Assembly (NCBI RefSeq): GCF_001194135.2
Contig: NC_068993.1
Coordinates: 64,806,716-64,870,715 of the forward strand
Direction of reading: 5' to 3'
Length of the DNA: 64,000 nt
DNA from: Octopus bimaculoides
Lineage: Eukaryota
Part shown: piece after piece, positions 1,314-60,104 of the stretch
Layout of the letters: the number at the start of each line of letters is the position of its first letter
Numbering within the stretch: the stretch's first letter is position 1
Notes under the pieces: generated by a model
The model's input: only the letters and a program-made list of their open reading frames with translations
What the model was told of the DNA's origin: nothing
Database searches by the model: none
Position numbers and translations under genes: made by a program

Positions 1314-1466
1314 GAACAACTACAAATGCAGAACTTTTGGGGAAAAAATGTGGCAATCAGACTCTGACGTTTGTATCTTCGAGCTGGAGTGTATATGTAG
1401 TGCTTCAACTAAAGAAATCAAACAGAAGCAACGCGTTGCTGGCGACATTCTATTCAGAGAAAAAAG
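1314..1466 (+). CDS. CUB gene exon C0 (C-terminal third of a CUB domain)
   Basis: Pyrimidine tract plus cttacag|GA acceptor; AAAG|gtaggt donor; 153 nt, phase 1-1. Translates (G)TTTNAELLGKKCGNQTLTFVSSSWSVYVVLQLKKSNRSNALLATFYSEKK, paralogous to C1 and C2. Confidence 0.85.
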
Positions 1467-4209
1467 GTAGGTGTATGTATGTGATCGTAAATGTTGGTTA
1501 TTTTGTATTATTAACACTGGAGGATTGTACGATAAATTTATGCTCGACATAATTTGGACTCAGAATGTAGAGGGTAGAAAGCCTTTTGTCAGGTACTCCA
1601 CCAATTCCAAAAAACTTCGCCTAAGGTATGATTCATATCCACTGTGTTTACCGAAAATTGCTCCTTCAAATACTGTATACGGAAGAAAAAAAACGGTCAT
1701 TAAGCTAATCTCTCGGAAAAGGTTGACTCTTCCACCGCAAAATATCAGACCGAAACTCTTGCTAAATGAACAAAGTCATTTACAAAGTTTACTAAGTTAC
1801 TATCAAGTCTACATGCAGAAAAACCGTAACTCTGGTGACCGAAAAAGGCATACTGTTCTTCCATGATGGGGCACTGCCTTTAAAAGTTTAGTACGTTCGG
1901 TATTTATTCTAACGATGGCGAGGCATCACAGTCCATTGCAGCATTACCTATTTACCGCTGAGTATGTGGTATATCTTTCGTATATACATTATATATGTAT
2001 GTATACATACACGTACACATAAATATGAAAGTATTTACGTATGTGTTTGTGTGCGTGCGTGCGTGTGTGTGTGTGTGTTTGTAAATATGCACGGATATAT
2101 CTTAATTATAAAGTTTTGTATATGTGTGTGATGTAGTCCATCTATGCTGGAACCACAGCATATCACAACGTGTAACTTCGTGCGATATCTTAAAAACATG
2201 TAATATCTTAATCATCAAATTCAATCAATACATGTTCATCATTTATTTCTGTACGTTAAAAACCTAAATACGGTGATGTGGCTTCGAAAGTCCCCTGACT
2301 GCTTCTGCGTTATTAGAAACTGTGTCTGGTGGAATTCCCCCGCCGCAGATACATTTGCTTCACATCACAACAGTCATCATTAATATGATAAAAGTTGCAT
2401 CGTTATGATATGTCGCGGTGCAACAAAGGATTATAATGAATTATACCAAAATAACGTTCATTAACCATTGGTTTTCCCCGTGGGGATCTGTAAATTAATC
2501 ATTCTTTATTAATGAACACTGTGGCGCCGTCTAGGATAAAAATAGATTTTAATCAAGATTTTTTTTAAAGTGTATAATCCGACAGCAGTAATTTGTTTCG
2601 CTTTTATTTCGTAATTAAATCAAATGACTTTAATTAATTATTATTTCCTATTAGTAGTAGTATTATTGCTGTTGTTGTCGTTATTGATTGTTGAATCATT
2701 AATTTACCGAACCAAAATGCAGGAATTAGTAGTATCTCTTTCCATTTCTCAGTTCAAATCCCGTTGAGGTCCATCTTACCTTTTACCATTCCAAGGGTCC
2801 TTAGTAATAACTCAGGACACCAAACTATTGTCCTTGTGCTTTTTATTTGAAACATTCAATATCATTATCATCATCATCATCATCATCACCATCGCTATAA
2901 AATTCAGACTCATCGTCATTGCGTTTACTAGAGGTTCAGTAGTTATAAAAGTATGTGCTACATTACAAATAGGAATTCTACTGCTTTTATCCGGATCCAT
3001 AAGGCTCGTATGTACTCCTGTTTCATTAGTTTTGCGAATTTACTGCTGTTTTATAGGCATCCTTCATTTTTTCATGCATTTTACATTGGCACTGACGTCA
3101 ATCCCGCTGCAATGATCTCACTTTTGCTGAGGTCCTTATAACGAGAAGAATTTCAGCTCAAAACGAAAGAAATTTCACTGATATTGTAAGTTGTTTCGTC
3201 AAATACTTCAACAATTTCGCCGATCTACTGCTTTGAACACGTCCTTTATTTGGAGATGTCCTAACGATGAAAGACAACGTTAAGCTAGATGAGTTTGGAC
3301 ATAGAATGCAGAAAGCTTCAATAAATACAAATCGTTCTATCCAGCACTCGAATGACTCTGTTAATTGCCCCATTAAACATATAATTCAGATTATATTCCT
3401 GAGGGCCTATATCTAAATGTCTGTTGAGTCTGGGCAGCTACTGAAAGCATTCTTTCGAGTGAGAAAAAAGTGAAACACAAAAAGTGTCTGAAACAAATAA
3501 ATAATAATTGGATATAACCAACATTATATATAAGCAACATAAATTGGCTGTTTTGTTTGCTTCCACGTTAAAAATGAAATTTTTTTTTTCTTCCAAATTG
3601 TTTAAACTGTTTCCATATTGTTTAAACTGTTTCCATATTTTGTATGTTTCTTATTTCTGGATGAAAAAGTAATCAGTCAACCGAATGAGACATCAGACTG
3701 ATCCAAGCAATATTACCTTCAGGCTTAAAAACTAATCTTAACAATTAGCTCGACGAATAAAAATGTGCCCTGTTCGGAGTTGTTTTTCTTGTTTAGTTCC
3801 GGCTCAGTCCTTCAACAAAGCAATTCCAACCTTAACTATCCCGTTTTTTTTTCCTTATATGTAAGGAAACTATATTCAGTATTGGATATGATTTGAAGAA
3901 GGTTTGCCTGTTCTCTCTTCTAGGGCGAGTTTATCACGACGAGGCTCTAACCTTAGTTCACTCTGTGTTGAGCCATAACAAATAAAACTCAGCTGACAAA
4001 GTTTGTCTTCGTGTAGAGTCATAACTTGCACACTGTAGTATTTTAGTAGTTTAGTATTTTATCCAATGAATTGTGCTGCGATAAAGGTTGCAAAGAACTG
4101 GTACGATAATAAAATTCCAATCGCCATCTTATAAACCACAGAAAGTTTATTAATGCAATACGAGTTTAAATAAGTTGTAAGGATTGTTATAAAGGAAGAT
4201 GAAAAATTG

Positions 4210-4310
4210 ACAGAATCGTTAGAAGATTGGATAGATGCAAGATGTAGTCCGAGTCTCAACGATTTGGGTTCAAATCCGGTCGCGGTCGACTTAACGATTC
4301 AATTTTGGGA
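4210..4310 (+). mobile_element. Degenerate SINE head (family A)
   Basis: gacagaatcgttag...gggttcaaatccggtcgcggtcgactt resembles the family A 5' half seen at 30783. Confidence 0.4.
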
Positions 4311-5374
4311 AACGATGCAGCGGGTTGACGGAACTATTACATATTCGAGCCAGATGCTCTGCAGTATCTATTCCAGCTCTTTGTGTTATAAAAATATTAC
4401 CTGAGGCAATATTGGTGCCAAGCTGTTGGCAGTTTTTTCCTGTGGATAACCAATAGTGAGTAAAAACTTCCAGACACAGGCAACTGTCAGTCTTCCGCGC
4501 AAACTTTTGCCCGGACTGGTGCCTACATGTTTTAATCGGAAAGTTATAACGATAAAAGCTCCCAAAGATCTTATGCTTATTCAAGTTTTCTGCATTTAGC
4601 AATATTACTAGATTGGAAAATTACATTAAATTCAGAAGCAATCATATAATTATTAAATAATTATTTCATTATGCATTCAAGGTCAACATGATTGTCAGTA
4701 AGAAGTCTGCATTTCATATACTAAAACCATAAAAAAATACAAAGACTTACAGAATATACGATGTACAAGATATAGGGGTTGTTTTATGTTCCTGAATTAT
4801 TTATTCATTCACTAAGCACACTGACCCACATATGTCTTAAACAGATTTTGCTCAGTTAGTTTCTAAAATATATTTTGTGTATTTAGTGAAATAATTTGCA
4901 TGCCAAGAGCCGAAATTTTGACAGCCTCTTAAAAGAGACTGTCAAACATAGGATTTATATTCAGCATCTCAAACAAATGAAACTGCGGAGACAGCTTTCA
5001 CTATGGTGTTGTTGTTGTTGTTGTTGTTGCTCGAATTCCATCTACAACTATCCAACCAATCTTTGATCATTGCGTGTCCAGGATAACGTTATCCAAAATA
5101 GCCCTCTCTTTTCAGAACAGTAGGCTATGGTTTGAGAGATATTTCGCTACCATTTCTAGCAGGGGCGTCGGGAGCAACTACATATTTTCTCGTTGGTTCG
5201 GTAGATTTGTTGTTAAGCCACTTCGAATCACAAATATTCTGAACCGTAGCAAACGACCGAGAATACAAGCTTTAACATTATTCTATCCACCAAGTTTTTA
5301 ATATGGTCTCTTATGTAGAATTATGTTGCAGAATCGACTGTAATCCAAAGATATTTTCTCATTCATTTTGGCAG

Positions 5375-5465
5375 AGGCTCAGTGTAAGGATATCGATAAC
5401 CGAATAAGCTTTTCCGATCAGAAGAACTACATATCCTCTCCCGAATTCCCGCGAATATACAGAAG
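5375..5465 (+). CDS. CUB gene exon A1
   Basis: ttttggcag|AG acceptor; GAAG|gtaaga donor; 91 nt, phase 1-2. Translates (E)AQCKDIDNRISFSDQKNYISSPEFPRIYR with Cys1 and the SPxFP motif. Confidence 0.88.
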
Positions 5466-5490
5466 GTAAGAATTTTGGTTATTCTCAAAC

Positions 5491-5500
5491 ATTTACAAAC

Positions 5501-5544
<44 letters not shown>

Positions 5545-6112: not shown

Positions 6113-6151
<39 letters not shown>

Positions 6152-10113: not shown

Positions 10114-10149
<36 letters not shown>

Positions 10150-10246
10150 ATATGTATATATATGTATATATGTATATATATGTATATATGTATATATGTA
10201 TATATATGTATATATGTATATATATGTATATATATGTATATATATG

Positions 10247-10279
<33 letters not shown>

Positions 10280-16797: not shown

Positions 16798-16922
16798 CAT
16801 GCGATCTTGTTCTTGGCTTCTTACGACATCTAAGAACCAAGTAATTCGACTAGAAATCATGTACGCCGATTTTCCACAAGAAACTCAATGCATGTCAAAC
16901 GCATATTTGGCAGTTTATGATG
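16798..16922 (+). CDS. CUB gene exon B1
   Basis: ttcattgcag|C acceptor; GATG|gtaagt donor; 125 nt, phase 2-1. Translates MRSCSWLLTTSKNQVIRLEIMYADFPQETQCMSNAYLAVYD(G). Confidence 0.9.
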
Positions 16923-30420: not shown

Positions 30421-30607
30421 ATTATTTTCCCTAGTAATGTGTATACTAAGTTATATATACATTATACGTATATGTGTACAATTTAAATTCTTTATTGTTT
30501 GTCTCATACTCTCGCATCTTTCGTTTTACAAATGCGCGTATGTATTACCACATCTGCTTAGGCGTTTACTTCTCATCTTCCGTCTCTTCTCAATATTTCT
30601 TTTCCTT

Positions 30608-31319: not shown

Positions 31320-31321
<2 letters not shown>
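30608..31321 (+). mobile_element. Head-to-tail array of four family A SINEs
   Basis: Copies at about 30608-30770, 30783-31008, 31009-31225 and 31226-31321; the last is truncated into (TG)n. Confidence 0.88.
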
Positions 31322-31379
<58 letters not shown>

Positions 31380-37843: not shown

Positions 37844-37934
37844 CGGAAGAATGTATTGGCAGTAGCCAGTTAACTGCCCAAAGACATACAAAGAACTACC
37901 TTCATACGCCATCATTCCCGACACCTTTCAAAAA
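37844..37934 (+). CDS. CUB gene exon A2
   Basis: tttttttgcag|CG acceptor; AAAA|gtaagt donor; 91 nt, same length as A1. Translates (A)EECIGSSQLTAQRHTKNYLHTPSFPTPFK. Confidence 0.88.
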
Positions 37935-42516: not shown

Positions 42517-42650
42517 AAATTCAAAGAAATCCAGCCACTGCGCCTGGGTCATAGCTTCTGATGGCCCTGATGTTGTGAAATTATCAATAATTTACTCCAA
42601 ACTATCAAAGAAAGAAGACTGTAGTGAAGAAAGTATAAGTGTTTATGATG
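42517..42650 (+). CDS. CUB gene exon B2
   Basis: ttatattttctag|A acceptor (a second in-frame AG at 42533-42534 is possible); GATG|gtaagt donor; 134 nt, phase 2-1. Translates NSKKSSHCAWVIASDGPDVVKLSIIYSKLSKKEDCSEESISVYD(G). Confidence 0.85.
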
Positions 42651-44646: not shown

Positions 44647-45382
44647 GTAAGTTTATATCGGCTTACTTTCTGCAATGATGGTCCTTGACTGTGAATCTAA
44701 TTACAAATGTTTATTATTTGACAATAAATATACTCTGAATCAAAGTACATCTGTACACTTGCATTTGTACACCTGCCTGCAGTTTTGTGGAGCCACAGTC
44801 AATAAAATGCAATTAACTAATTAAAAAAAATACATTATTACATTACTCTAAACATCAATGTGAGTAGCATTATTGACACTGGCATTTAGCTGTGCATTTT
44901 AGTTTGTCTGACACTAGTTGTGAATACAAGTAGTCAAATACGATGGTTTAATTTTGCCTCAAAGCATGTCTCACACTGGTGCTGCCAAGAAAGTGAGAAA
45001 TTGTGCTTATTTCGACTTCGGGTTATGGCTGATACTAAGGTTTAAATGTGTTTCAAATAGGTTTTACTCTGGGATTTATTAATGCCTCCAAGTATGCAAG
45101 ACATTAATGTGTATTTGTCCCTAAAAGTATGTAAGAGTGTATTTCTAGGTTGTTCATGTTTAGTTTCTTCAATAAGGGCACAAGTTTTTCATGGTTTACC
45201 ACCAAAAATGCACGTTTGGACTCACCAAATTTCATTCTAATGTCTTTAAAGAATTAGGCTATTTCATACAAACACACACACACAACATAAGCACACTCAT
45301 ACGAACTCATTCAGACACATGAACACAAACTTTCTCTCTCTTTCACTCTTTCTTTCTTTTTCTCTCTCTTTCTCTCCTGCTT

Positions 45383-45464
<82 letters not shown>

Positions 45465-46099
45465 CTACAAACATTCACATGCACAAACATATCCTGTCAC
45501 ATAGTTTTAAGTCAGTTCCTATGGAAACAATCAATTACAACTTCTGCTATGTCAGCAATGTTCATTTCTGATTGGTCAAGATTACATAAGTTTAGGGTCT
45601 TGTTACTTTCCCATTAATACTTTCTTGAGAAAATTAATGTGATCTTTGTCATCATCATGCAAATCTACTTAAGTTTAGAAAATTTGAGATAATTCTAGGG
45701 ACTGGAAAGAATTTAAAAAGCTTCAATCTCTATTGATAAAAGAGATTTTTTAACCAGTGTCCTGTAATAAGATCTGGGCTTTGGGATGTCCTGCGTAGCA
45801 ATTATTCATTACTCCTTCGAGCAGTGCACAGTTGATTTGATCAACACACCTGTGGCATCTCTCTTCAAACTCATGTTTCCTTTGATTGGGGTTTTTTCCC
45901 TCACTCTTTCTTTCTAACAGGCTCATTATTTTATTGTGACTGGAGTTTGCTCCCACAACTAATGGTGTTGTTGTTGTTGTTGCTGGATGTTCTGTGATGG
46001 TAAGTGTGGGAGAAGCAGATTGACTACTACTGCTGCTGCTGATGATGATGATGATGACCATCATTGACCTTGATGTTATAGCTGAATGTTGTCTGTTTG

Positions 46100-48950
46100 G
46101 TGGTGTTCCCATTCGTTGAGTGTAATGATTGACTTATTAGTTTGCATATAATTCCTTGTCTGTTTAGATCTTTTGCACTTAAGTTTAATTCTGGACGTTT
46201 GATGTACCACAGACTTTTCAGCCTTTGCGTAAATCCCGTGCTTTAGGCTCAGCTTCCAAGCATAATTCATATACTTGTTTATTTATTTCATAATCCTATA
46301 TTGTGCATATTGCCGTGATTACGATGAAGAAGACTAGTATGTTTAGCCATGAAGACTTGTGTCTTTTTACTTTCAATTTTCATTTAAAATTAAATAAGAT
46401 GCTGTTCTTCAAAAGTTCTGACACATTTCTGCTGATTTCATCAAGTGTCCAGTCTAATATCCCAAATGTTGGTACTAGCACAAGCACTGCAGCAGTATTA
46501 TGAAGTATGGTCTTATTGAATGCAAATAACTCCTGAGTTCCATATTTCCTGGAGTCTGCTGAAGTATTCTTTTGTTATTATGGCTTTACTCACAGCTTAT
46601 ACAATATTTTCATCAATATTGAGATATTAATAAAATATTCATCATTGAAGACAAGGGAGATAGACAAGCCATTGATGTTCATGCTGTCTGGTCAATAATC
46701 TCTCCTCAGTTGACTATCATGTGTGAGCATTCATTTTGACCAAACTCTGTTTCTTTTTTTCCTGTGAGAATGTTGTGACAAGTTTTAATTGTTTCTTGTT
46801 GTTCATGCTACCAGTAGGCCATTAACCAAAAATGTGTGGGTGAAATTAGTTTTATTCTTTTCTGCCCATCCTAATGTGAAGCCTTGGTACTTCCGCAACA
46901 ATACTGCCAGGGGCTGACAAGGGGTTTCACTCTAACAACATTAGAGATAAACTTGGAATGCTCCCATTGAATAGCATTTGTAACAGTATTGCTTTGGTTG
47001 TTAAGGATAACTGTGTTGTGGTCAATCTTTCAATAGCATTAACCATAGTAGCTGCTGCTTTGGGAAGATGTAGTGATTCTTGCATCTATGAACAAGGGAC
47101 AGTTAAATATTTCTCCGAGTGTAGCCATATTGTTAGACGGTTACAATGATAGTTCCTTAAGGTTAGCTTTGTTGATAAGATGCAGTTCAGCACAGCCCCA
47201 GACTCCCTTTTTCCTCCTGCCTGTTCATTGCTTATTATTCCATTTGTTTGGCAATGATCTTAAAGAAACACATTCAAACAACCTGTGTATACTTTGTCCG
47301 TAAGATTCAAGATGTTACGGGCCAGTAGTGTTTGACCACATGGGTCTCTCTCTCTTCATGGATTCAGATGTAATCTGTGCAACTGTCAACCAATTTAATT
47401 CAGTGTCCATTGTTTTTAACAGAGTTGTGAGAATTATTCTGGAGAGTGAGTTTTTTTCTACCAGTAGCATAATATCCGGTTTCTTCTAGGCGATTCTCCA
47501 TTTGAAAGTTTCATAATGACAGTTAAGAGTGTTTCACTGGTGTTGTTATACATTTTGGGAAAGGCATTTACACAATACCCACTTTGTAGGTTGTTTAACC
47601 ATGCTGTATCGCAAATGTGTTCTTTGTTTATATTCCACATTCCCCACCTCAGTGACTCTAGGTTCTCTTTGGGAGGATCATTTACTACCTTGATGGTATA
47701 CCTTGATGGTATACCTTGATGGTATACCTTGATGGTATACCTTGATGGTATAGCCTTTCATATTTCAATACACAGCATTTACAGGATAGGCTGGATTTCA
47801 GGCAACTTGCAGTTTATTGTTTTGCATCTATTGTAAATTTTTAACATAATGAAGCTTTTCACTTACTTTTCATAGGTTGTATTTGAGGACATTCTGTTTG
47901 CTTGTGAGTGTTTCTTGGTGGTAATTATCAAACAATTTGGAGAATCTATCATGCAGTCATAACTGGCAGTTCTTGAATTCACTTTTCACTTCCCATTTGA
48001 TGAGTTTCCACCTGTACAATTTATTTCCCAACTCTGTTGATGTTGTTTTAGAGCAAATATATCTATTTTTGCTCTGTATTATGTTTTGGATCATGTCTTT
48101 TATTCTCATCTTTTGGCTCACAGTTACTACTGCACAATATAGTAGAACACTTATTATCCAAAAACTGGGAATTTGAATTTTAGTTGCTCCCTCGCAATTT
48201 CCCCACTCATGGATAACATCAGATTGGTGAGGATTTTTCCTCAACACTTGTCAGGATCATTCTTTTATACAGTGCTTTATGCATGTAAATAGTGAAGTTC
48301 TGTTTAGAACTCTATGCAAGCTGCAATTTTAATTTTCGTATTCCTCACTTCTGTTTTCGGAGAATATGAGCAACTGCCGCTTGTCCATTTAATGGTGGTG
48401 CTTTGTCATTGCTGCCATGCTTGTCTTGATCTTACTTCTTGCCATTCACGTCTTGATCTTACTTCTTGCCATTCACAGTCGCTTCATGGACAAAGTTTAT
48501 TATGTTGTCAGTACAAGTATTATCATTTTGGATAAGTGATTACATTTGGTAAAGTGGTGCATTTCTTTTCAACAAATGAAGCTTCTTGGCATAATTGTCT
48601 CTCTGCAAACTTTGAGAATATTAAGCATTTTTTATCCCAATATTCTTTTAGTCTCTTCATGTAGCTTGTTGATGGATCTTCCCTGACCTTTCTATAGAAC
48701 TGGTATTGGTCTTGGTTCAGTTCGAAAAAGTCTACTGGAATTTCTCACGATAGATCCATGATCTGCAATAGCTGACTCCTGATACTTGTCTTGCTATGGT
48801 AATATGTAGTAGTAATTTGCCACATGGTATGTATTAACTTAATTTCGCTGTTCGATTACTGCTACGATCTTTTCTTCCAAAATGTTGTTTCGTTGCATTT
48901 ATTCAAAGGTAAATAGTATTCTTTATCTGAGAGAATATAAAGATCGCCTT
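46100..48950 (-). mobile_element. Degenerate R2-superfamily (R4/Dong-like) non-LTR element: N-terminal region plus RT
   Basis: N-terminal SYMKRLKEYWDKK..FAERQLCQEA (48560-48680). RT motifs HYWPVT, KVYTGCLNVFL*DHCQTNGISNEQAAG, WGCAELHLINKA and QLKLVTTFSQ..EFGQNEC. Many stops and frameshifts. Confidence 0.75.
47688..47752. repeat. 13-bp tandem repeat x5 (CCTTGATGGTATA)
   Basis: Five exact units read directly. Confidence 0.95.
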
Positions 48951-49154
48951 ACCATCATGCCTGTATTCAACGCCATGATATGTAGTATGTACGCATGCAT
49001 GTGTGTGTGTGTGTGTGTGTGTGCATACATACATGTATGTATATGTGCAGTTTTGTATGTTTGGTTTTATGTGTGTATTTTCCAGAGGTTTATTGATTAA
49101 GTATTAAGCATGTGTAGACATACTCATACTTAAACAATAAACTTCTGGAAAGTT

Positions 49155-49470
49155 TTACAGATTTTTACAATTCCAGTGATGTTTTTGAATTAGCTTTCTC
49201 CTTTCTGGTTTTCTGAAGCCTAATTTCTCTAGATTGGTATTTATGCAGTGTATTACATATCCCAGTACTCCAATAATTACAGGTATAAACCTGAACTTGT
49301 TATCTGGATAGAATAACTGCAGATTTCTCAATAGTTCAGAGTAGGTATTCTCTGTTTTGCTGATCTTTAGCTTTATGTTAACATCCGCTGGGCAGCTAAT
49401 TTCCACAACTCCGCACAGTTTCTCTTTTCTATCCCAAATCATTATATCAGGTCTATTGTGTTTGCATTTT
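49155..49470 (-). mobile_element. Restriction-like endonuclease (RLE) fragment of an R4/Dong-like element
   Basis: HNRPDIMIWDRKEKLCGVVEISCPADVNIKLKISKTENTYSEL..FIPVIIGVLG matches the RPD..E..CP..K..Y RLE motif. Confidence 0.85.
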
Positions 49471-49974
49471 ATTGTTGCATGTATGTATGTATGTGTGTAT
49501 GTATGCATGTATATGTGTGTGTGTGTGTGTGTGTATTTGCATGTATGTCTGCAAAGCAAGTGTACACCACCAGTCAACTTACCCACAATTTCACAAATTT
49601 TAACACCAAATATTGTAAATAATAACATGGTTACTTACTAACTAGAAATAAAAGAGTTGATCTGGGACTAAATAGCTACAACAACAATTTGGAATATATA
49701 TTTTTTTTTAGTTGTTTCAATCTATATGCTATAGCCATGCCAATGTAGTAGAAATGAGATGGAGTTATGTTATATTGGAAAGATATTGTTTCAATATAAA
49801 ATACTACAAGGTATATTATGAGGTCAATTCAGTAGATCTCTCTTTCAAAAATTACCTGAACTACAAAAGCTCAACATATTAGTTTGCAAAATGGATGACA
49901 ATTTCACAAATACATATATCTTTTATATTATCCTCAGAATCAGGCTATGATATGGCTTGACATTTGAAATACAG

Positions 49975-50096
49975 GTGCAACAATATCCACTGGGCCTTCC
50001 AAATGTTTCCATAAGCCTGGTTTCATTGACTCAACTCAAAGCAAATTGAAAATGACATTTGCTCATGATGCCATGCAAATGGATCAAATTTTGTGA
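49975..50096 (+). pseudogene. Candidate decayed or alternative CUB C-type exon
   Basis: tacag|GT start as in C1 and C2. Reads (G)ATISTGPSKCFHKPGFIDSTQSKLKMTFAHDAMQMDQIL*. The spacing C-x8-ST-x2-KL-x-M-x-F matches C2, and NGS follows in a shifted frame. Confidence 0.45.
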
Positions 50097-52493
50097 TTGG
50101 AAAGTGATCTCTTTAACCATTTGGCCATACTGGAATGATGTACACTAAATTGGCATCTAACTGTATTATTCGGTGAAACTGACAGCTTAGAGCAGTCGGT
50201 TGTTGGTGGTGCTCTTTCCTGCTATTGCTGTTATTTTTGTTGTTAATGTTACTGTTATATGGTGTGATGTGATACAATGGCAAAAAGATGTCATTTGAGA
50301 TATTAAGTTGTTGTTTCATATGGATGTGGTACATATTAAAAATATATCTGATAATAAAGTAAAACAGAATGTGCTATTGATTTTGATACATTGATAGAAA
50401 TAAAAGTATTACATTATATAAAATAGAGAAAAGGAAATAACTAATTTCATTAGATATATGAAACTAACACAGAAATATCTATCTATATCTATCTATNNNN
50501 NNNNNNNNNNNNNNNNNNNNNNNNNNNNNNNNNNNNNNNNNNNNNNNNNNNNNNNNNNNNNNNNNNNNNNNNNNNNNNNNNNNNNNNNNNNNNNNNNNNN
50601 NNNNNNNNNNNNNNNNNNNNNNNNNNNNNNNNNNNNNNNNNNNNNNNNNNNNNNNNNNNNNNNNNNNNNNNNNNNNNNNNNNNNNNNNNNNNNNAGAGAG
50701 AGAAAACGAAAGTGTGTAATGAACTAATATCTGATACAATATTATTCTTTGATGCAATATAATGACAGTGATGGTGTTTTGTGCAGTTATTGCACCAAAG
50801 CTAGCAAAGATGATTTGTACTTTGCTATTGCAAGCTGTAAGACTATATTACTGCTTTACAGGATGTTTGTCTGCACTATATGACTATTATAACACTAAAA
50901 ACTACCTAGAAAAGTAAAAGAAGAATTATGTTCAGCAATAAAAACAAATAAGAATGTTATTCTATGTACGCTGAACGTTTGACAAAATATTGGTTGATAA
51001 ATGTCACAAGCACCATTGATTTATATGACCTCTTAAACTCAAAGTTCAGATACTTATTTCTTTTGACTCTGCATAACGTGAAGAAATTATTATAATAAGA
51101 TTGACCAAAGACAGGAATTAGTTTTATGTGGATGTATGAATGAGAGAGAGTTAAATCATTCTAGTTTGTCATTATAACTGCTTGTGTTTGGAGGTAATAC
51201 ATACATTTATGCTTACATACATACACAATATATATATATATATATANNNNNNNNNNNNNNNNNNNNNNNNNNNNNNNNNNNNNNNNNNNNNNNNNNNNNN
51301 NNNNNNNNNNNNNNNNNNNNNNNNNNNNNNNNNNNNNNNNNNNNNNNNNNNNNNNNNNNNNNNNNNNNNNNNNNNNNNNNNNNNNNNNNNNNNNNNNNNN
51401 NNNNNNNNNNNNNNNNNNNNNNNNNNNNNNNNNNNNNNNNNNNNNNNNNNNNNNNNNNNNNNNNNNNNNNNNNNNNNNNNNNNNNNNNNNNNNNNNNNNN
51501 NNNNNNNNNNNNNNNNNNNNNNNNNNNNNNNNNNNNNNNNNNNNNNNNNNNNNNNNNNNNNNNNNNNNNNNNNNNNNNNNNNNNNNNNNNNNNNNNNNNN
51601 NNNNNNNNNNNNNNNNNNNNNNNNNNNNNNNNNNNNNNNNNNNNNNNNNNNNNNNNNNNNNNNNNNNNNNNNNNNNNNNNNNNNNNNNNNNNNNNNNNNN
51701 NNNNNNNNNNNNNNNNNNNNNNNNNNNNNNNNNNNNNNNNNNNNNNNNNNNNNNNNNNNNNNNNNNNNNNNNNNNNNNNNNNNNNNNNNNNNNNNNNNNN
51801 NNNNNNNNNNNNNNNNNNNNNNNNNNNNNNNNNNNNNNNNNNNNNNNNNNNNNNNNNNNNNNNNNNNNNNNNNNNNNNNNNNNNNNNNNNNNNNNNNNNN
51901 NNNNNNNNNNNNNNNNNNNNNNNNNNNNNNNNNNNNNNNNNNNNNNNNNNNNNNNNNNNNNNNNNNNNNNNNNNNNNNNNNNNNNNNNNNNNNNNNNNNN
52001 NNNNNNNNNNNNNNGGCTAGAGTTGAAGTGCTCAGCATGAGCTAGAATTCATCTTATAGTAAAAATAGATACATAAGGGTGGAAAATCACAGGAATAATA
52101 CCATATGTCCAACGCAAGATACAATATGTGTGTTCAATTCCTTCAAGAATCAATAAATGAATTTATAGTATTCAGTCTCTAAAGTGTCTAAAAGGTACGG
52201 TAAAAAGACAAGCAAATACAACAATAAAAACTTTAGAAATATGAATGTTCAAAATATTTATTAAAAAAAATATTTATAAATATGCATGATTTCTAAGTTG
52301 TATAAAAATATGACAATTAAAGTTAAAACATTACGATGTGTAAACGTACATTATGATATAACATATAATGGGTAAATATATATTTACCCATTCACTACAG
52401 CTGTTTCCAACAAATTATTAATTGATTAATGGAAACATTACAGCATTAGAAGAAACCGTTTTCATCAGCTAAATACATGAGCCACAACATTTC

Positions 52494-52604
52494 GAAACAT
52501 TCAAAAGCCAACGGCATGATTCTACAAGCCTTGCGTTTTTACGGCCTTGTAAAGGCTTGCATAGAATCATGAAGGTGCCTATGCCGTTGTTTTTTGAATG
52601 TTTC
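52494..52604. repeat. Imperfect hairpin of about 110 bp
   Basis: gaaacattcaaaa..caacggcatgattcta..caagcctt pairs with aaggcttg..tagaatcatg..atgccgttg..tttgaatgtttc. Confidence 0.75.
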
Positions 52605-53613
52605 TAAATATTCATTAACCATAAGTAGTATACCTGAAACAACCCCTGGTCTGGAGTAGGACTGGACCGGACAGTAAGAGGATACAATTGGTCAGTTAAT
52701 TTTCAAAAGCAAAAGGCTGGTCATAAGGAAACTGTTACTAACTGTAGTAAAAAGGTAAACAATGTGCGTATGCTATATGGGGCGCTAAAAGTCATTTATG
52801 TCAGTAGTTTTAGAAATGTAAACGTTGAATTGAACATTTAAGAGAATTCGTGGTACAGAGGAGGTAAATATGCAGTTATCAAGTAATTTCTATGCTTTAT
52901 GCATGTATTACACTAGCGGTTAAGAATGTATATAGCTTCTATTAAATTAAGTTAGGCGACATGCATAGAGAGGCGGGCTCTAAATAATTGATATCATTAT
53001 TATTACATATCTCAATAAACCTGTTGTAATATATATCTGTATATAAATACACAGGTATATATAGATATATACACACTCATACATACACACACACACATAT
53101 ATATATGTACTTTCCTATACAACTTTATGTATCTATATAAGTGTATATTCATATGTGAGTGAGTATTACTAATTCGTTACGGTAATTGCTCATTTTATAT
53201 ATCTATCCCACGCCCCTCCCCCCTTATATAGGAATGTATCACTTAATATTATTACTACCCTTTATTCTATACTCCGAATATCAGTCTTGTGTTTAACAAA
53301 CTACTTCATTAACACAATTTAATTTATTCACTTTGACTTTAACGTAGTCTTGCATCTCACCAAATATTTAGCCATACACTGACACACACACACATTATGT
53401 TGCACCTGTGTGCATAAGTATATTTTTCTGTTCATACTGATTCTTATACTATTGCACACTCTTAGAGACACATCCAATCATTAACTGCTGCACGGAATAC
53501 ATAAGCTTTCTGTTCACTGCTGCATTCATCCTGCACGGCACAAATACGTGATGCTGTTGCATGGCTTTCTGTGCACAGTTACTAGTACATTCTCTAACAG
53601 GAGGCGTAGATAG

Positions 53614-53688
<75 letters not shown>

Positions 53689-54470
53689 GAGGATGAGTCT
53701 CATCTAAGCAGACCATTTTCATGTTACAATCTACATCCACTGAATTGATCAAACAGTACAGTACTTCTGCTTCGTTGATCAGAACGATTCGTAAATACAG
53801 CATATTGTATCTGAAGATGGAACTTCAAACATGTCAACAAGACCATAAAGTGGGGCAGAAGTTGGATAATATCTCTGGCCACTCGAATGACCGCGTAAAG
53901 ACTGATGCTTTGTTCCGTTAACCTTCATTACTCCATATTTCTCCTATCTGCCAAGAACACAGAACTACATTCCAAATTGTATCATTTTCAAAGAAGGATT
54001 TGCTTTGAAATTTAACAGCCATCTCTACCAAGCTGAACCATCTCACAAAGGCTTGGTCTTTGGCATCTTATTCTGAGAGTTGTGAATAAGGATGAAACAT
54101 GAGAAGTGGAGCAAAGTGTACTGAGTTCAGTAATGTGTAAAAGATTTGGCTGATATAATTGGTCTGGTCAATCATCTGTCAGAAGTCTTTTAGAATATAC
54201 AATAGAAAGCAATAATCAATTCCGGTTTGACAGGATTAACTAAATCTAAGATATTGTTCTACATGAAAGTGAAGAATTATATCGAACGGCAGTCTTTTCA
54301 TATTTTCTTTCTTATCTTTTCGCTATTCTTTATTTTTTTATACATTTCCTTTTTCTTTTGAGGGTTGAATGGTAAAAAAAATAATAAATTGAATAATAGC
54401 GTTTTTGCAGGAACCTTCGTATGGAATATATTCAAACTCATTTTTAGTATAATAAAAGTCAAGATCGTGC

Positions 54471-54501
<31 letters not shown>

Positions 54502-54954
54502 CATGTGTGTATGTGTGTGTGCCGAAAAACTTGAACCGCACCAATTCTGGCAGTTTATCATTTTACTGAAATAATATTTTTACTCCTTTTCCATTTTTCT
54601 TTATTTTATCATTTTCTGACAACGCTGTTTTTTCAAAATTTTCTCGTAAATTATCAACCCAGTTCCGTTTATATGACTCACGGGTAGTGTTACTATATTC
54701 AGGGGAACAGGGACAATAGCAAATGGAAGTGGAAGCTGTCGATGTGGTAGTGTGGTAGTAGATGAAAGAACACGTCAACTCTGCACCTTTATTAAGACAA
54801 CTAAGCCCCACGACCAGGCAGGAAACAAACTATTCGAAACAGTTTGAACCATTAAGTGTTCGCCGTACCTTACCTAACCTCAATTTTAATCTAGGTTTAA
54901 TCTTTAATCTAGGTTTACTCTTTAATCAAGGTTTAATCTAGGTTAGAGTATAAT

Positions 54955-55100
54955 AATGTCGGCAATGTGTTAACGACAGATTTATTAGTTTGTCGAACAA
55001 AATGCCTTGCGATATTCTTTAGTTTTTAGTTGAACTCCGACTGAGATCGGTTTTTTTACCTTTCATTCTTCCACAATGGATAAGATAAAAGACTACTCAA
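54955..55100 (+). mobile_element. Very degenerate SINE family A copy
   Basis: aaaatgccttgcgatatt..gttgaactccgactgagatcg..tacctttcattctt..gataagataaa. Confidence 0.4.
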
Positions 55101-55237
55101 GGACTGGAATCGATTTATTCCAACAACAAACCCGAATTTCTGGACTTCTACTTTATTATCATTTAAAAACAAAAATTAAACAGATTTATCAACAACTGGG
55201 TAATCTTTTCTTGTTTAGCTCCTTAATCACGCAAACC

Positions 55238-56060
55238 AAGTTAAAGGCAAAAGCAGACGAGATAATACAGAAAGTTAAGGGGGGAAGTGAATGCCAAAAT
55301 AATCCAAAAGACAGTCGAGCAGGGCCAACAAGGACACTTGTCGATATGGGAAAGTGCACTGGAAAGAAGTCTCAGCTGAAACTATGCGCGGTGTCTGGCT
55401 CTTCTAAGAATCCACTTTATTCTCAGGCTCTATATGACTTCTTGTCCTCGTATACGAACTTTGTGAAGCAGTGGTGTCCTTTCTACCAGCACAAATAACA
55501 AGAAAACCATGCCTTGAGCCTGTATAAAATGGTACGTCCACTTGGAGGCACAATCAAGTGCTTAAAGAGATCATATATGCGATCTGTATTGTGAGAAGGC
55601 AAAAAAAACAACGCTACCAGAAACTCCAACAATACTCTTCACGGCAGATGACAGAAAATTTTGACCTGGAACAGCTGTGCCAATCCTATCTTAGAAGAGT
55701 GGTCTGCTGGATGGAATAGCTTACTGGGAGTGCACAGCAAACCTCTAGAATGGAAAAATTATCCAGAAATCAACAAGAGTAATATGAGATCGCATTTTCA
55801 GGAAAAAAAAACAAGTGTTTCTGACTGAACTCACTGCGCCATGTAAAAGTAGGACGAAAGAAGCACAGATGCCTAACACTGAGAAGTATACCAATTAAAC
55901 CAAGCAGACTTACCATAAGGGTAAGAACAAGGGGACTTGCTGGCAAACCTGCATACGATCTCATCAAACGGATTTCATTTTCTGGTAAGAGTACCAGAGC
56001 TCTAAAGGCAAAGACATAAGTAAGCGGGAAGATTTCCATTTGGATTCGATTAAGAAGGAA
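55238..56060 (+). mobile_element. HERO-type (R2 superfamily) non-LTR 3' fragment
   Basis: TVEQGQQGHLSIWESALERSLS*, ALYDFLSSYTNFVKQW, GTSTWRHNQVLKEI and KQVFLTELTAPCKSRTKEAQMPNTEKY match the HERO post-RT and RLE motifs; frameshifted. Confidence 0.82.
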
Positions 56061-56442
56061 TAGAAGTGAACATGAGAAGGGGTAACTTGGTCTACTTACA
56101 GCTCGTGTCTGGTAGCGAAGTGTTGACCGCTAATGCGACTTGGCTTTGAGGCATTCAATCACCTTGAAAGTTTTTTCAGTCTAAAACAGTGGCATATGGT
56201 ACGATAGCAGAGGAGTGTCCAGGAATCATGACTGGATGCAGCCCAGCCTCTCAGAAATATTTTCATGGGAGGAGCAGCTCCTTCTTTGAAGGTCCTCTAC
56301 TCTTCATCCCTCCCTTAGAGTGCCGTTAAACCCCGCCCTTGTTTTTTTTCAAACTAAACCATTAAAAAAAATAAGATAACAAATATGGTTTCGTCTCAGA
56401 TTTATTTGTGTTTCGGGTAATAAAATATTATTTGACCCTTCA

Positions 56443-56551
56443 CCTCATTTAGTTTCCTGGTGTTCAGTTGAACTAAGTCATCTCATTTAGTTTCCTGGTG
56501 TTCAGTTGAACTAAACCATCTCATTTAGTTTCCTGATGTTCAACTAAACCA
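56443..56551. repeat. 38-bp tandem repeat, about 2.8 copies
   Basis: Unit tctcatttagtttcctggtgttcagttgaactaa(g/a)(t/c)ca; no spacers. Confidence 0.9.
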
Positions 56552-56703
56552 TTCTATGACTCACTTTGTGAGTGGCTGACATGTCATTCCTATTGTGACT
56601 CCTTTCCCAACAACTGCCTATTATATATGCATCTGATGACACAAACTTCAAAACTGAACTCAAGTATAGGTTTTCCAATAAAGTTTTATGAATTTCGGCT
56701 TTG

Positions 56704-56742
<39 letters not shown>

Positions 56743-57744
56743 GTTGTTGTTGTTGTTATTTATTTATTTGTGTGTGAATGTGTGTATATATGTTATTTGA
56801 TTGTTCCTTCCACTATTAACAGAGGAAGTCATAAAATTAGATGTAGTTTCGTGTGAGAATTAATGGTTAATTCAGTTTTAGTAGAATGACATGGAAAGAT
56901 GCACATACACATACATACAGATACACACACGCATATGTATATATTATAAATACATGCATGCATACATACATACATGCATGCATAAAAGTTTGGAAGTTAA
57001 CAAGCGAGGAAATACTGCGATATAACGAGGCGATAAGCAAATGTTTATTAGCCTCAGTTTCAAATTACAATAAAGCAATTTAACTTATGTTTTAAATGGC
57101 TGTGCAAGTCATTAATTCTGTGGAAGATTAATCATTAAGTGTTGAAATCTTGACTTACTTCCAAAATCTACCGTTCGTTACCGTGATAAATAACATTCTC
57201 TGAAGGACGTTTACTAAACATTCATTTAGAACTATATTTAAATTATTCTTTCATTTTAAAGACAGTCCTCGAGAGATGTCACCAGTGTAAGACTAACTTT
57301 CCCACTTCCTTTCCACCAGACTCTGGGGCTTTGTGAAGGATCTTAGGTCCTACGCTTCTTTCTCTAAGTCATTAAATAATACGACGAACGATGCACAAAG
57401 GGGACAAAGTTAATAGAAATCACTAACACAGAGTAGAACTAGATAAAATTGTATTTGTGCAATTGTCTAATTTAAAGAACATACTCTGACAATCCATAAT
57501 GTGCTGTAAAGCGTTTTGGATAATTTGAAATGCAAGCAATATATTCTTTATTAAACATACAATTTTAGCTTTGAAAATTAAACATTGTATCTACACAAAG
57601 TTTACATTTATGGAATCGATCTGATAAATATCTGGTCTTTTTAGAACTCTATCAATGCCTCACATTCTCTCTCCCTTACTCACTCTTTCCCTCCCTCTCA
57701 CCCCCTCTCTCTCCCTCTATGTGAGTGTGGGTGTGTATACAATG

Positions 57745-58626
57745 TACATTGCAGAAGTTTTGAGACGATTTTAGGAGAATGAAAGTTACAACTGTTCGAA
57801 ATTATTATAATTTTAGTATATCCTTACTATACATTTTAATAAGCTAACTTGCCAACTGTTGTTATTCTAGATTGAAGGAGACGTTTGAAACAGTACCTTG
57901 AACACATTCTGCTAAACACTGTTTCTCACAGTTTCTGACTAGTTTGCAGAATGCAGTCGAGACGTGAAGACAATTTGGAAGCATGCTATGCAAAAGAGTT
58001 TCGAATTAAGCTGAGCAAAAACGCTACACGCTACAGAAACTTATAAAACGTTCCAGGATGCTTTGGGATTAACTTGTATGAACCGAGCCCCTGTTTTTCG
58101 CTGGCACAAAAGGCCAGGAAAAGCAAGTCCACCGGGAAACTCATGCTGATCCCCTTTTTCAACAGACAGGACATCATCCACTCGGTTCCTTCTGGCGAGA
58201 CTGACAGCAAAGAGTATTCTGTGGAGATGTCGAGGAAGTTCAGGAAGAGATTTCATCGCAAAAGTTCAGAGCAACTGCCCCAGTTCCATCCTGGTAAACG
58301 AATACATCAGTCTATTGTTCCATCCTGGCAATCAACTACTCGACAGAAACAGGCGTCAAAACTATCCCTCTCCTTCCCTACACTCCAGACCTTGCTCCGT
58401 GGTAACTCTTGGTTGTTCCCAAAGTTGAAGGAGGAGATGAAGGAGGCTGTGACAAGGATCCTGAAAATCTTCACTCTGAAGGACTTCCATGAAGCCTTCA
58501 CAAAGTGGCTAGAGTGTTACAACATATGTACTGAAGTCAGAAGATCTAACTTTGAAGGAGATAGTTTGATATTTCTTTGAAATTAATTAATATCTCGCTT
58601 GAAAAAGTCTCAAAACGTCTGGATGA
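57745..58626 (+). mobile_element. Internally deleted mariner element with both TIRs
   Basis: TIRs ta-cattgcagaagttttgagac / gtctcaaaacgtctggatga. N-terminal HTH (ETYKTFQDALG..MNRAPVFRWHKR) is joined directly to the catalytic part (KSTGKLMLIPFF, PYTPDLAP, WLFPKLK, FEGD). Confidence 0.85.
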
Positions 58627-59830
58627 CCAAAATTACATTAAAATATCTTGAAATACTAAAGAGTAAATTTATTCAATAAAATATCCATTGGCTTCAACCA
58701 CAGCCTCCAGACGACTTCGAAATCTCCTGCAACTCTTCTGGACGGTCTCCGTGTTTAATTTGGTGAATGCTGCCGTAATCCTTGCCTTCAGTTCATCTTT
58801 GGTGTTACAAGGAGTTTTGTTGGTCTCTCACCGAACTTTGCCCCACACATAATTATCAAAGGAGTTGCAATCTGGAGAGTTAGGTAACCAGATTTTAGGG
58901 GTGTTGTGGTCGCAGAAATTGTCTGACAACCATGACTGGGTTCTCCTGCTTGCGTCGCATGGTGCAGAGTCCTGTTGCCAGACATAGGTTCTTCCAGCAT
59001 CCACCCGCTTAACCCAGGGCAGCACTACCTCCTCCAAGCACTTGATGTAGGCCTCCGTGTTAAGTTTATGGCCGTGTGGGAAGGTGAATGGGGGCATAAC
59101 GTCACCATCACTAATGATCACTCCTATGATGTTGAACAGATGTTTGATTTTTATTACTCTTGGTACATGTTTTGGGGACACGGCAAGGCAACAGTTGTTC
59201 TCTGTGTTCACCATTTGATCCTTGCAGAAATTTTTCTCATCTGAGAAAAACCAAAGCATATTCGGTTGGAGGGGATGCTTGAGATTGTTCAAAAGCTTCG
59301 TAGTGTGGCCTTTCCTCTTGTCCTTGATGGCTTGGGATAAAAATTGGCCCTTTCTCATCTTGTATGAGGAATAGCGAATGTCTTAATGCACTGCCTGCCT
59401 GATAAGAAACTCAGACACTCCCATGTCCCTGGCGATGACTTGGAGGGATCGTTGTCAATCGTGATCTGGATCTCACCAACAAATTCAGGAGATCTTTTCT
59501 TATCAGAACAATCAGAGTGAGTTTTCCGAGCTGCCCCCCTACCTTCGCAATCACCATTAAACTCGTCCAACTCTTTCTGAATCTTCTGCACTGTCCTCGG
59601 GTTGACACCCACAAACTCTGAAACGTTCGTATTGGAGCTTCCGGCGCGAATTCCAAGCGGTACAGCATGTCGTTTCCAAATTTCTGGCAGTGTATTGCGT
59701 CATGGTACTGTTTTCCTTATAGACGGTGCCCAACTGATCCTACTATACTGTGTAGACGACTAAATCAAAAACAACAATGCGTATGCGCGAAATAAAAATT
59801 ATAAAATGACAATTTACTCATCGCACCCTG
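58627..59830 (-). mobile_element. DD37D (maT-type) IS630-Tc1-mariner element, degenerate, one TIR missing
   Basis: WFFSDEKNF...YVWQQDSAP-...-NSPDCNSFD, with 37 residues between the last two Asp (counted by hand). TIR cagggtgcgatgagtaaattgtcat followed by TA at 59831-59832; frameshifted N-terminus. Confidence 0.9.
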
Positions 59831-59979
59831 TACATTTGTGTGTGAATGTATGTTTGTATGCGTGTACGTATGCATATATCAAAACATTTTTTTTTTCTAG
59901 GGAGTATGTCAATTTATATTCATTTATATTTACACTCATCAATAAACGTTTCATTTTCCTTTTTTGACATTTCTGCCAG

Positions 59980-60104
59980 CTCGATGTCCCGATCTTGGTC
60001 CATACGATCAAAAAATGCAGACGAAAACGTGGTATTAGAAGTAGCATTTTCAGATATTTACTTGTCTTCTGGTTGTGAAACGGATTCTGTGTCCGTCTAC
60101 GACG
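59980..60104 (+). CDS. CUB gene exon B3 (Cys2 replaced by Arg)
   Basis: atttctgccag|C acceptor; GACG|gtaagt donor; 125 nt, same length as B1; open frame SMSRSWSIRSKNADENVVLEVAFSDIYLSSGCETDSVSVYD(G). Confidence 0.8.

Follow-up and report, generated by a model that had tools for sequence, protein, structure and literature searches.

The DNA analyzed here, a window of 64,000 nucleotides from Octopus bimaculoides, is part of the chromosome record CM046613.1 (about 64,806,716-64,870,715), and the GCA_001194135.2 sequence is 100% identical to it, gaps included. From the end of the fifth CUB domain (CUB5) to the middle of CUB8, the window covers the 3' half of a very large gene, which is an already annotated or predicted O. 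bimaculoides membrane protein gene with eight CUB domains. The orthologue in Octopus sinensis (XP_029644438.1, 1086 aa), like the gene in general, has been given the name 'cubilin' automatically by the databases. It has a signal peptide followed by eight CUB domains, a single transmembrane (TM) helix and a short tail, and its gene spans ~397 kb. Each domain in the window is encoded by a cassette of three exons, referred to as A, B and C.

Eight exons were located on the plus strand, with junctions placed on the basis of splice signals, RefSeq models and orthologue proteins. The series starts with C0, the C exon of CUB5 (1314-1466; 153 nt, entered and left in phase 1, flanked by AG and GT; HMM E=2.4e-14), which is 96% identical to residues 591-641 of the O. 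sinensis protein. CUB6 follows with A1 (5375-5465; 91 nt, phase 1 in and phase 2 out; E=3.5e-6), B1 (16798-16922; 125 nt, phase 2 in and phase 1 out; E=2.8e-12) and C1 (21693-21842; 150 nt, phase 1 in and out; E=4.4e-15). CUB7 is encoded by A2 (37844-37934; 91 nt; E=8.5e-7), which shows 100% identity to O. sinensis, together with B2 (42517-42650; 134 nt; E=1.3e-14) and C2 (44497-44646; 150 nt; E=3e-15), and the B exon of CUB8, B3, lies at 59980-60104 (125 nt, phase 2 in and phase 1 out; E=2.9e-15). A preliminary description of the locus had given the same exon lengths (A 91 and 91; B 125, 134 and 125; C 153, 150 and 150 nt) and the same extent, 1314-60104, which runs from the first base of C0 to the last base of B3, and all of these values were reproduced exactly.

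Every exon piece matched the family HMM at E<=3.5e-6 (8 of 8, in a search of 3144 six-frame segments), and AG acceptors and GT donors are used throughout with the single exception of C1, whose donor AAG|gcaagt produces a GC-AG intron. The three-exon layout, read in the octopus gene from the end of CUB5 through CUB8, has intron phases of 1 before A, 2 between A and B, 1 between B and C and 1 after C, confirming at the window exons the 1-2-1-1 pattern and the phase-1-symmetric cassette described earlier. All four readable domain boundaries are in phase 1 (before A1, after C1, after C2 and, in GCA_001194135.2, after C3), as are all domain boundaries of the abalone and Argonauta relatives. The statement that lengths are kept while paralogous sequences diverge also holds, since the CUB domains of the gene are 16-40% identical to one another.

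The CUB assignment is supported by sequence and by predicted structure. A Pfam run on the spliced 297-aa product, proposed in the preliminary description as a check, matched CUB (PF00431) over two stretches at E=4.8e-30, scoring 104.6 bits where the cut-off is 21.4. The AlphaFold model is all-beta (pLDDT 76), and its top Foldseek matches are the tandem CUB domains of PCPE-1, neuropilin and cubilin (E 1e-15 to 1e-17), with target-normalized TM-scores of ~0.8 against single-CUB chains. The four conserved cysteines, forming two disulfides, are complete in CUB5, CUB6 and CUB7. CUB8 retains the second pair only, an arginine in exon B3 replacing the second cysteine. The first cysteine pair is also lost in some other CUB domains. 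The Cys-to-Arg change in CUB8 is common to the cuttlefish.

Ten N-runs interrupt the window, all of them between exons. As the product of C0 to C2 is collinear with the O. sinensis, Argonauta and cuttlefish proteins with no residue missing, no exon was lost in the first eight. The last two, of 198 N (50497-50694) and 768 N (51247-52014), both fall in the interval between C2 and B3, and the A exon of CUB8 was not found in the readable sequence of the window. Without this exon C2, which ends in phase 1, cannot be spliced to B3, which requires phase 2. The exon, with an inferred length of 91 nt and an expected product that includes ...TNSPSQDRLVAMSSAIGYIHPPNFPQPYQ..., is probably hidden in one of these two gaps, the first of which is present in GCA_001194135.2 as well. 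Because it most likely lies inside an assembly gap, RefSeq has split one O. bimaculoides gene into two models, 'cubilin' XP_052828520.1, which maps exactly onto exons C0 to C2, and 'nas-39' XP_014782933.1, whose first exon is B3 and which continues with a C exon of 153 nt and a TM/tail exon, both outside the window.

B3 is a genuine exon of CUB8 and not an orphan; in the aligned part 35 of 35 residues are identical to O. sinensis, the match to XP_014782933.1 is likewise identical, and identity to the cuttlefish is 71%. The B exon standing without an A exon at the 3' end is an artefact of assembly and annotation. XP_052828520.1 instead ends in a cryptic terminal exon on the plus strand (48698-48750) that encodes the tail KLVLVLVQFEKVYWNFSR, for which no counterpart was found in any of the orthologues. 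Most likely this exon was called because the A exon is missing; it might instead be a genuine alternative 3' end, whose product would lack the TM helix. A true deletion of the CUB8 A exon in O. bimaculoides, with a secreted seven-CUB protein ending at 48698-48750 and the downstream exons separate or decaying, would agree with the absence of the exon from readable sequence and with the prediction of the same cryptic tail in two successive RefSeq annotations (P0203 and P0209). We consider such a loss very unlikely, as the reading frames of B3, C3 and the TM/tail exon are open, their splice sites are good and their sequences are nearly identical to O. sinensis, 966 N fall in exactly the interval where an exon of merely 91 nt is expected, and the O. 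vulgaris, O. sinensis, Argonauta and cuttlefish proteins all retain the CUB8 A exon.

Collinear proteins were identified in O. sinensis (isoforms X1 and X2), O. vulgaris, Argonauta and cuttlefish, and the full-length orthologues of O. sinensis, Argonauta hians and cuttlefish each contain eight CUB domains and a TM helix. Domain-by-domain alignment of these three orthologues revealed no cassette-sized indel. Identity between the O. sinensis and cuttlefish proteins is 88-94% in CUB1-3 and 64-71% in CUB4-8. The O. sinensis RefSeq isoforms X1 and X2 differ solely in eight N-terminal residues, and the members of the decapod cluster, of which seven are transcript-derived and one comes from a genome annotation, show no gaps when aligned to the matching part of the 1084-aa reference. 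The variants of a cephalopod paralogue likewise have N-terminal differences only or are truncated fragments. The predicted product is a type I membrane protein in which a signal peptide is followed by eight contiguous CUB domains (122-125 aa each), a single TM helix and a tail of ~45 aa, and the cephalopod CUB number has probably stood at eight since before the octopod-decapod split.

These comparisons bear on the interpretation first given to the locus, namely a recognition or adhesion gene, restricted to the lineage and evolving fast, in which the duplication or skipping of whole cassettes changes the number of CUB domains and orphan exons decay in the introns. Several features agree with it: duplication or skipping of a phase-1-symmetric cassette would preserve the frame, the paralogous domains are highly divergent, and in the abalone Haliotis cracherodii one segment with a cassette lies next to a 96%-identical copy and tandem genes vary in CUB number. 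Nevertheless, we judge this reading very unlikely. The full-length cephalopod orthologues carry eight CUB domains each with zero cassette-sized indels, per-domain identity between octopus and cuttlefish is 64-94%, and isoforms and transcripts differ at the N terminus only or are collinear fragments. No isoforms or species differing by whole cassettes, as in a Dscam-like choice, were found among the cephalopod orthologue models, a comparison limited to assembled models. Orphan A-, B- and C-like pieces, reported in the 3' introns, were undetectable by HMM; after the eight exons the next match had E=0.5 and lay on the minus strand, and the 3144 six-frame segments yielded no further CUB-like pieces in the window. 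The apparent exon birth and death is traced to an assembly gap hiding one exon, B3 being real. The preliminary description had itself named conserved orthologues with the same domain count as evidence against its interpretation, and within cephalopods such orthologues are what we find, with isoforms that differ only at the N terminus. Nor is the layout specific to the lineage, as abalone genes share its intron positions and phases. What stands is the tandem CUB array of three-exon, phase-1-symmetric cassettes, and what falls is the fast-evolving gene of variable domain number. Highly probable as a whole, and the best explanation of the locus, is a conserved eight-CUB membrane protein gene with an inherited molluscan cassette and an artefactual 3' irregularity. 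The main value of the result is therefore corrective, in that an apparent diversifying immune-type gene turns out to be a conserved and already predicted one.

Family members bear the names cubilin, BMP1, tolloid-like and DMBT1, all of which are misleading. Orthology to cubilin, an endocytic receptor acting with amnionless, could be suggested by the best PDB sequence match of the octopus product, cubilin CUB5-8 (E=1.9e-30), ahead of PCPE-1 and neuropilin, and by the many top matches of ~3,200-3,900 aa with many CUB repeats in protein searches, one of which was looked up (P0003) and is annotated as cubilin. The octopus protein also resembles cubilin in its long run of directly adjoining CUB domains, in its top structural matches and in its N-terminal CUB domains, which retain the Ca2+-site acidic residues that cubilin-type CUBs use in ligand binding. 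However, the high cubilin scores simply sum over many repeats. Cubilin itself combines 8 EGF with 27 CUB domains and arrives at the luminal membrane only with the help of amnionless (PMC3462684). The cuttlefish orthologue showed eight CUB stretches and no EGF domain by Pfam, whereas frog cubilin in the same scan displayed EGF domains and 27 CUBs, and the octopus protein has eight CUB domains and a TM helix of its own. The gene structures differ as well: of the 67 exons of the cubilin gene, exons 21-29 encode CUB5-8, which gives roughly two exons to a CUB, compared to three for the octopus protein. On these grounds a cubilin orthologue was rejected as extremely unlikely. Tolloid/BMP1 was also rejected, as the astacin domain (PF01400) is absent from P0002, P0164, P0166 and P0167 and is carried by genuine fish BMP1 entries. 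None of the family proteins checked contained an EGF or astacin domain, and the full-length ones among them have a TM helix.

The Pfam scan of the cuttlefish orthologue and the precomputed list for O. sinensis contained only CUB-type domains. Hydropathy revealed one N-terminal and one C-terminal hydrophobic segment, the latter, IWLCIALLILIILVGCFLL, having a mean hydropathy of 3.24. CDCP2, the neuropilins, NETO and the Caenorhabditis elegans proteins SOL-1 and LEV-10 are organized similarly, with their CUB domains outside the cell, a single membrane pass and a short tail. Neuropilin and NETO2 CUB domains were among the sequence and structural matches of the octopus product, the NETO2 sequence match being weak (E ~1e-3). 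The octopus array of eight is longer than that of CDCP2, which as mapped carries three CUB domains; neuropilins, NETO, SOL-1 and LEV-10 have 2-5. Single-pass CUB proteins often add LDLa, FV/VIII, MAM or ZP-like domains; NETO and LEV-10 carry LDLa and, like SOL-1, are auxiliary proteins that associate with ionotropic receptors. Pfam detected no LDLa in the cuttlefish scan or the O. sinensis list. SOL-1 and NETO have auxiliary roles at ion channels (PMC9282427).

Relatives of the gene, 25-45% identical to it, were identified as Haliotis 'cubilin-like' proteins (P0168, P0165) and as the cephalopod paralogue, labelled 'BMP1-like' or 'tolloid-like 2' (P0225, P0166, P0049). A Haliotis rufescens relative has 26 exons corresponding to a signal peptide, eight A, B, C cassettes and a TM exon, with phases 1-2-1-1, and the same three-exon layout was read for five CUB domains of an Argonauta paralogue. 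Across the Haliotis and cephalopod-paralogue genes, a signal peptide exon of 58-61 nt precedes cassettes in which A measures 76-109, B 119-140 and C 138-159 nt, again with phases 1-2-1-1. Relatives whose 3' end was mapped or whose complete protein is known terminate in one TM/tail exon or in a hydrophobic helix at the C terminus. Eight CUB domains are present in P0168, P0225 and P0166. Since the abalone relative has the same cassette and phases in all eight CUB domains, the three-exon layout is ancient. CUB1-4 can be clearly paired, domain by domain, with those of the cephalopod paralogue, and no clear diagonal of domain-to-domain similarity was found with the abalone protein. In the absence of a clear one-to-one correspondence, the abalone genes may be members of the family and not strict orthologues.

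The CUB units here are in phase 1 at both ends, as in the CUB genes of Nematostella and rodents, and so resemble the class 1-1 (phase-1-symmetric) extracellular modules reportedly described by Patthy in the theory of exon shuffling. In the outgroups, Nematostella and rodent CDCP2, one exon encodes each CUB and is flanked by phase-1 introns, whereas the mollusc CUB is split by two fixed internal introns (phases 2 and 1); as a consequence the duplicating unit is the three-exon cassette and not one exon. The arrays were probably built by tandem duplication of this unit, which in abalone is apparently still duplicating. H. cracherodii has the same layout together with a 96%-identical tandem duplicate of 665 bp that covers exons and introns, and abalone arrays, unlike the octopus gene, show recent cassette duplications of their own and differing CUB numbers. 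More tentatively, and with somewhat less than even probability, these genes could represent a mollusc family of signal peptide-CUB(n)-TM receptors that grows by cassette duplication, with eight domains kept in two cephalopod paralogues from before the divergence of octopods and decapods, duplication active in abalone and a TM-less product possible in O. bimaculoides. If true, the family would allow a repeat array that is stable to be compared in nature with one that is active. The cassette with fixed introns, shared by abalone and cephalopods, is a clean marker for tracing how such arrays are constructed.

The residues of the CUB-consensus Ca2+ site are a Glu five positions before the third Cys, an Asp three positions after it and an Asp in the F-x-[ST]-D loop. 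These acidic residues take part in ligand binding by CUB domains (PMC8051872). In CUB1, CUB3 and CUB4 all three are kept in three species, and in CUB2 the Glu and first Asp are kept, the third position being Asn in the two octopods and Asp in the cuttlefish. In CUB5-8, which are encoded in the window, at least two of the three are replaced, placing these domains outside the Ca2+-binding subtype. The membrane-distal CUB1-4 are also the best conserved, and CUB5-8 less so. In an assignment based solely on residue conservation, CUB1-4 are likely to form a ligand-binding head because they are best conserved and keep the acidic Glu, Asp and Asp positions, and CUB5-8, having lost at least two of the three and being less conserved, are more likely to act as a stalk or spacer that would keep the head off the membrane.

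The window is AT-rich (~35% GC) and eukaryotic, and ten N-runs break it up. Open frames bounded by AG and GT were sought at the exon lengths proposed in the preliminary description, and eight plus-strand exons were recovered: the last exon of CUB5 (C0, 1314-1466, 153 nt), all three exons of CUB6 (A1, 5375-5465, 91 nt; B1, 16798-16922, 125 nt; C1, 21693-21842, 150 nt) and of CUB7 (A2, 37844-37934, 91 nt; B2, 42517-42650, 134 nt; C2, 44497-44646, 150 nt), and the middle exon of CUB8 (B3, 59980-60104, 125 nt). Pyrimidine-rich acceptors were found in all eight. The donor after C1 (21843-21848, AAG/gcaagt) is GC, the sole non-GT donor among these exons, and is used by the RefSeq model. Splicing from C0 to C2 gave a single open frame with intron phases 1-2-1-1 (before A, between A and B, between B and C, and after C) in each domain, and the 297-residue product matched Pfam CUB with an E-value of 4.8e-30. 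The closest solved structures were cubilin CUB5-8, PCPE-1 and neuropilin, and an AlphaFold model (pLDDT 76) matched the same tandem-CUB structures. The exon map, phases and CUB content put forward in the preliminary description are therefore correct.

A word-indexed protein search with the 297-residue product gave no match, but an exhaustive HMMER search did give relatives, including a 1084-residue cephalopod protein collinear with the query, whose cluster holds 'CUBN' from Sepia (Acanthosepion) pharaonis and many transcriptome contigs. Searching with this protein identified 'cubilin isoform X2' from O. sinensis (XP_029644438.1, 1086 aa), to which the window exons are 96-100% identical. The same cluster contains models from O. 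vulgaris and Argonauta hians and two O. bimaculoides proteins, XP_052828520.1 (906 aa) and XP_014782933.1 (166 aa). The window's own substitutions are present in both of the latter, and the XP_014782933.1 locus in GCA_001194135.2 (CM046613.1) is 100% identical to window positions 49984-64000, gaps included; this identifies the window as O. bimaculoides chromosome sequence. XP_052828520.1 falls exactly on the exons listed above. RefSeq carries one gene as two models, XP_052828520.1 as 'cubilin' and XP_014782933.1 as 'zinc metalloproteinase nas-39'. The former ends in a cryptic exon at 48698-48750 with the tail KLVLVLVQFEKVYWNFSR, the latter starts at B3, and the break (within 44647-59979) falls exactly at the unreadable A exon of CUB8. 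The gene, which belongs to a molluscan family of multi-CUB membrane proteins, is conserved and had already been predicted, but it is misnamed and wrongly split. Its value is modest, lying in the annotation fix and in the shared three-exon cassette. A literature search on CUB domains, exon shuffling and phase 1 found no paper in the collection searched, and among papers there naming both cubilin and Octopus none treats the eight-CUB gene.

In the orthologues, a hydrophobic signal segment at the N-terminus is followed by eight contiguous CUBs of 122-125 residues, then by a strongly hydrophobic helix close to the C-terminal end and a short tail. Pfam identified CUB-type domains alone in these proteins, with EGF and astacin domains absent. 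Downstream of the window, the same record contains exon C of CUB8 (C3, 153 nt, phase 1-1) followed by one last exon for the transmembrane helix and tail. A true cubilin was rejected on the basis of eight CUBs instead of 27, no EGF repeats and a transmembrane helix of its own; membrane localisation of cubilin depends on amnionless (PMC3462684). A tolloid/BMP1 identity was likewise rejected, as Pfam found no astacin domain. In its layout the protein resembles single-pass CUB membrane proteins such as CDCP2, neuropilin, NETO and SOL-1, and no test assigned it to one of these families. CUB8 lacks the first disulfide, with an arginine at the second-cysteine position in B3 (SRSW, not CxW) and no cysteine in the A exon of the orthologues' CUB8. 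The arginine is also found in cuttlefish, so the change is old.

The preliminary description had further proposed exon birth and death, with orphan A-, B- and C-like pieces in the 3' introns. All ten N-runs lie between exons. No residue was missing when the C0-to-C2 product was aligned with the proteins of O. sinensis, Argonauta and cuttlefish; the first eight gaps therefore hide no exon. Between C2 and B3, every orthologue contains approximately 30 residues (NTNSPSQDRLVAMSSAIGYIHPPNFPQPYQS in O. sinensis), which would correspond to a 91-nt A exon if the junctions are conserved. These residues are encoded nowhere in the readable window. Among splice-bounded open frames in 44647-59979 whose length is 1 mod 3, all candidates were implausible, and permissive tblastn with octopus and cuttlefish A-exon peptides gave matches confined to the paralogous exons A1 and A2. 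An A exon is required to keep the reading frame between C2, which ends in phase 1, and B3, which is entered in phase 2. B3, C3 and the transmembrane exon are intact and near-identical to those of O. sinensis. The interval includes two N-runs, at 50497-50694 (198 N) and 51247-52014 (768 N), and the most economical explanation places the A exon of CUB8 in an assembly gap. This placement explains why the RefSeq model stops at a cryptic exon and a new one begins from B3. We infer an exon of 91 nt bounded by AG and GT, entered in phase 1 and left in phase 2, that would encode approximately TNSPSQDRLVAMSSAIGYIHPPNFPQPYQ.

An HMM of the family, based on 24 orthologous CUB domains, was also run against all 3144 six-frame segments of the window. 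It recovered the eight exons at E-values of 3.5e-6 or lower, with the next-best match at 0.5, and tblastn with each exon peptide found nothing beyond the same eight. Therefore, the window contains no orphan pieces detectable by these searches, and B3 is a working exon. Together with an absent A exon explicable by a gap, this leaves exon birth and death without support. An FCG-containing open frame at 58205-58294, considered as possibly C-like, was rejected as it gave no CUB HMM match; it adjoins a Tc1/mariner-like remnant.

Full-length orthologues from O. sinensis, Argonauta and cuttlefish each contain eight CUBs and align free of cassette-sized gaps. Between O. sinensis and cuttlefish, identity is 88-94% in CUB1-3 and 64-71% in CUB4-8. 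Paralogous domains inside one protein share 16-40% identity; the duplications are therefore old and separate domain identities have been kept. Eight N-terminal residues are all that separates isoforms X1 and X2 of O. sinensis. Among the decapod cluster members, four are full-length variants and four are partial products that include the genome-annotated Sepia protein; they showed no gaps against the reference except for a single gap in one partial Sepia model. A second cephalopod paralogue ('BMP1-like' in O. sinensis; 'CUBN', 1054 aa, in cuttlefish) also has eight CUBs and a transmembrane helix, and its CUB1-4 pair one to one with CUB1-4 of the gene, which indicates that the eight-domain plan is older than the gene duplication. 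On the available evidence, drawn from assembled models and transcripts, the gene is not fast-evolving or variable in CUB number, and the proposed diversifying recognition gene is not supported. A Dscam-like diversifying gene was rejected because orthologues and isoforms show no cassette differences.

The three-exon cassette itself is shared with abalone. A 'cubilin-like' protein of Haliotis rufescens (1054 aa; signal peptide, eight CUBs, transmembrane helix) mapped exactly over 22.5 kb to 26 exons: a 61-nt signal peptide exon, eight A/B/C triplets (A 76-97, B 119-140, C 138-159 nt) and one transmembrane exon. All eight triplets have phases 1-2-1-1, and as in octopus the A/B intron lies four residues ahead of the second cysteine and the B/C intron directly past 'YD' ahead of a conserved glycine. 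The Argonauta paralogue has the same structure (61; 88/125/156; 97/125/153; 91/125/150; 94/125/153; 88/125/...). A multi-CUB membrane protein of Nematostella and the CDCP2 of rodents have a single exon per CUB with phase-1 boundaries. The phase-1 symmetric module is therefore the general metazoan rule, and these mollusc genes share two additional internal introns. In human CUBN, which has 67 exons, CUB5-8 occupy exons 21-29. At the Nematostella vectensis locus L003 (501-9320), a 904-residue protein carries the name 'bone morphogenetic protein 1'; it has no astacin domain in its Pfam listings and reads as another misnamed CUB-array membrane protein of five single-exon CUBs, a ~250-residue spacer, a transmembrane helix and a tail. 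At similar coding length, the gene spans 22.5 kb in H. rufescens, 156 kb in A. hians and 397 kb in O. sinensis, and in cuttlefish the last 4.5 CUBs alone take up at least 148 kb; cephalopod introns have hugely expanded while exon sizes stayed fixed.

Cassette duplication, proposed as the source of varying domain number, is seen in Haliotis cracherodii. The H. cracherodii 'cubilin-like' model (P0165, 1838 aa; locus L005, 501-51725) fuses two tandem genes in one prediction, the first with six CUBs and the second with at least seven, each followed by a transmembrane helix and tail. Adjacent segments at 44940-45603 and 46082-46746 of this locus are 96% identical over 665 bp, a stretch that takes in both exons and introns of a single CUB cassette; three-exon unit duplication is therefore real in the family, if the assembly is correct. 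Abalone and octopus arrays showed no diagonal of domain-to-domain similarity, which fits independent array growth in gastropods.

In octopus, Argonauta and cuttlefish alike, CUB1, CUB3 and CUB4 keep the Glu/Asp/Asp positions of the Ca2+ site. CUB2 has the full set in cuttlefish and two of these positions in the octopods, and CUB5-8 have each lost at least two. In solved tandem-CUB complexes the Ca2+-site loops form the ligand site (PMC8051872). These residues and the conservation gradient suggest a protein in which CUB1-4 would form a membrane-distal, Ca2+-dependent binding head and CUB5-8, the part coded in the window, a four-CUB stalk.

Seven long intronic ORFs had no Pfam match, and the whole window had no Rfam match. 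The C2-B3 intron contains two long ORFs on opposite strands (58074-59358), neither with a Pfam match; the minus-strand ORF (58828-59358) weakly matched the catalytic domain of Sleeping Beauty transposase (E=8.7e-4) and is likely a Tc1/mariner remnant. Just past B3, a block at 60400-61970 (~55% GC against 35% for the window) consists of direct repeats interleaved with inverted ones, 40-130 nt long and 81-93% identical, and matched neither Pfam nor Rfam. It is followed at 61974-63988 by ~2 kb of a degenerate short repeat of TCGT type (503 copies, 72% matches) of extreme strand asymmetry (AT skew -0.61), the translation of which is an endless 'SFVRSFVR'. A tandem repeat at 30805-31321 has 2.4 copies of a 217-nt unit at 85% identity, and nearby open frames at 30562-30695 and 31255-31397 have translations that look alike, a possible sign of a dispersed SINE-like element.
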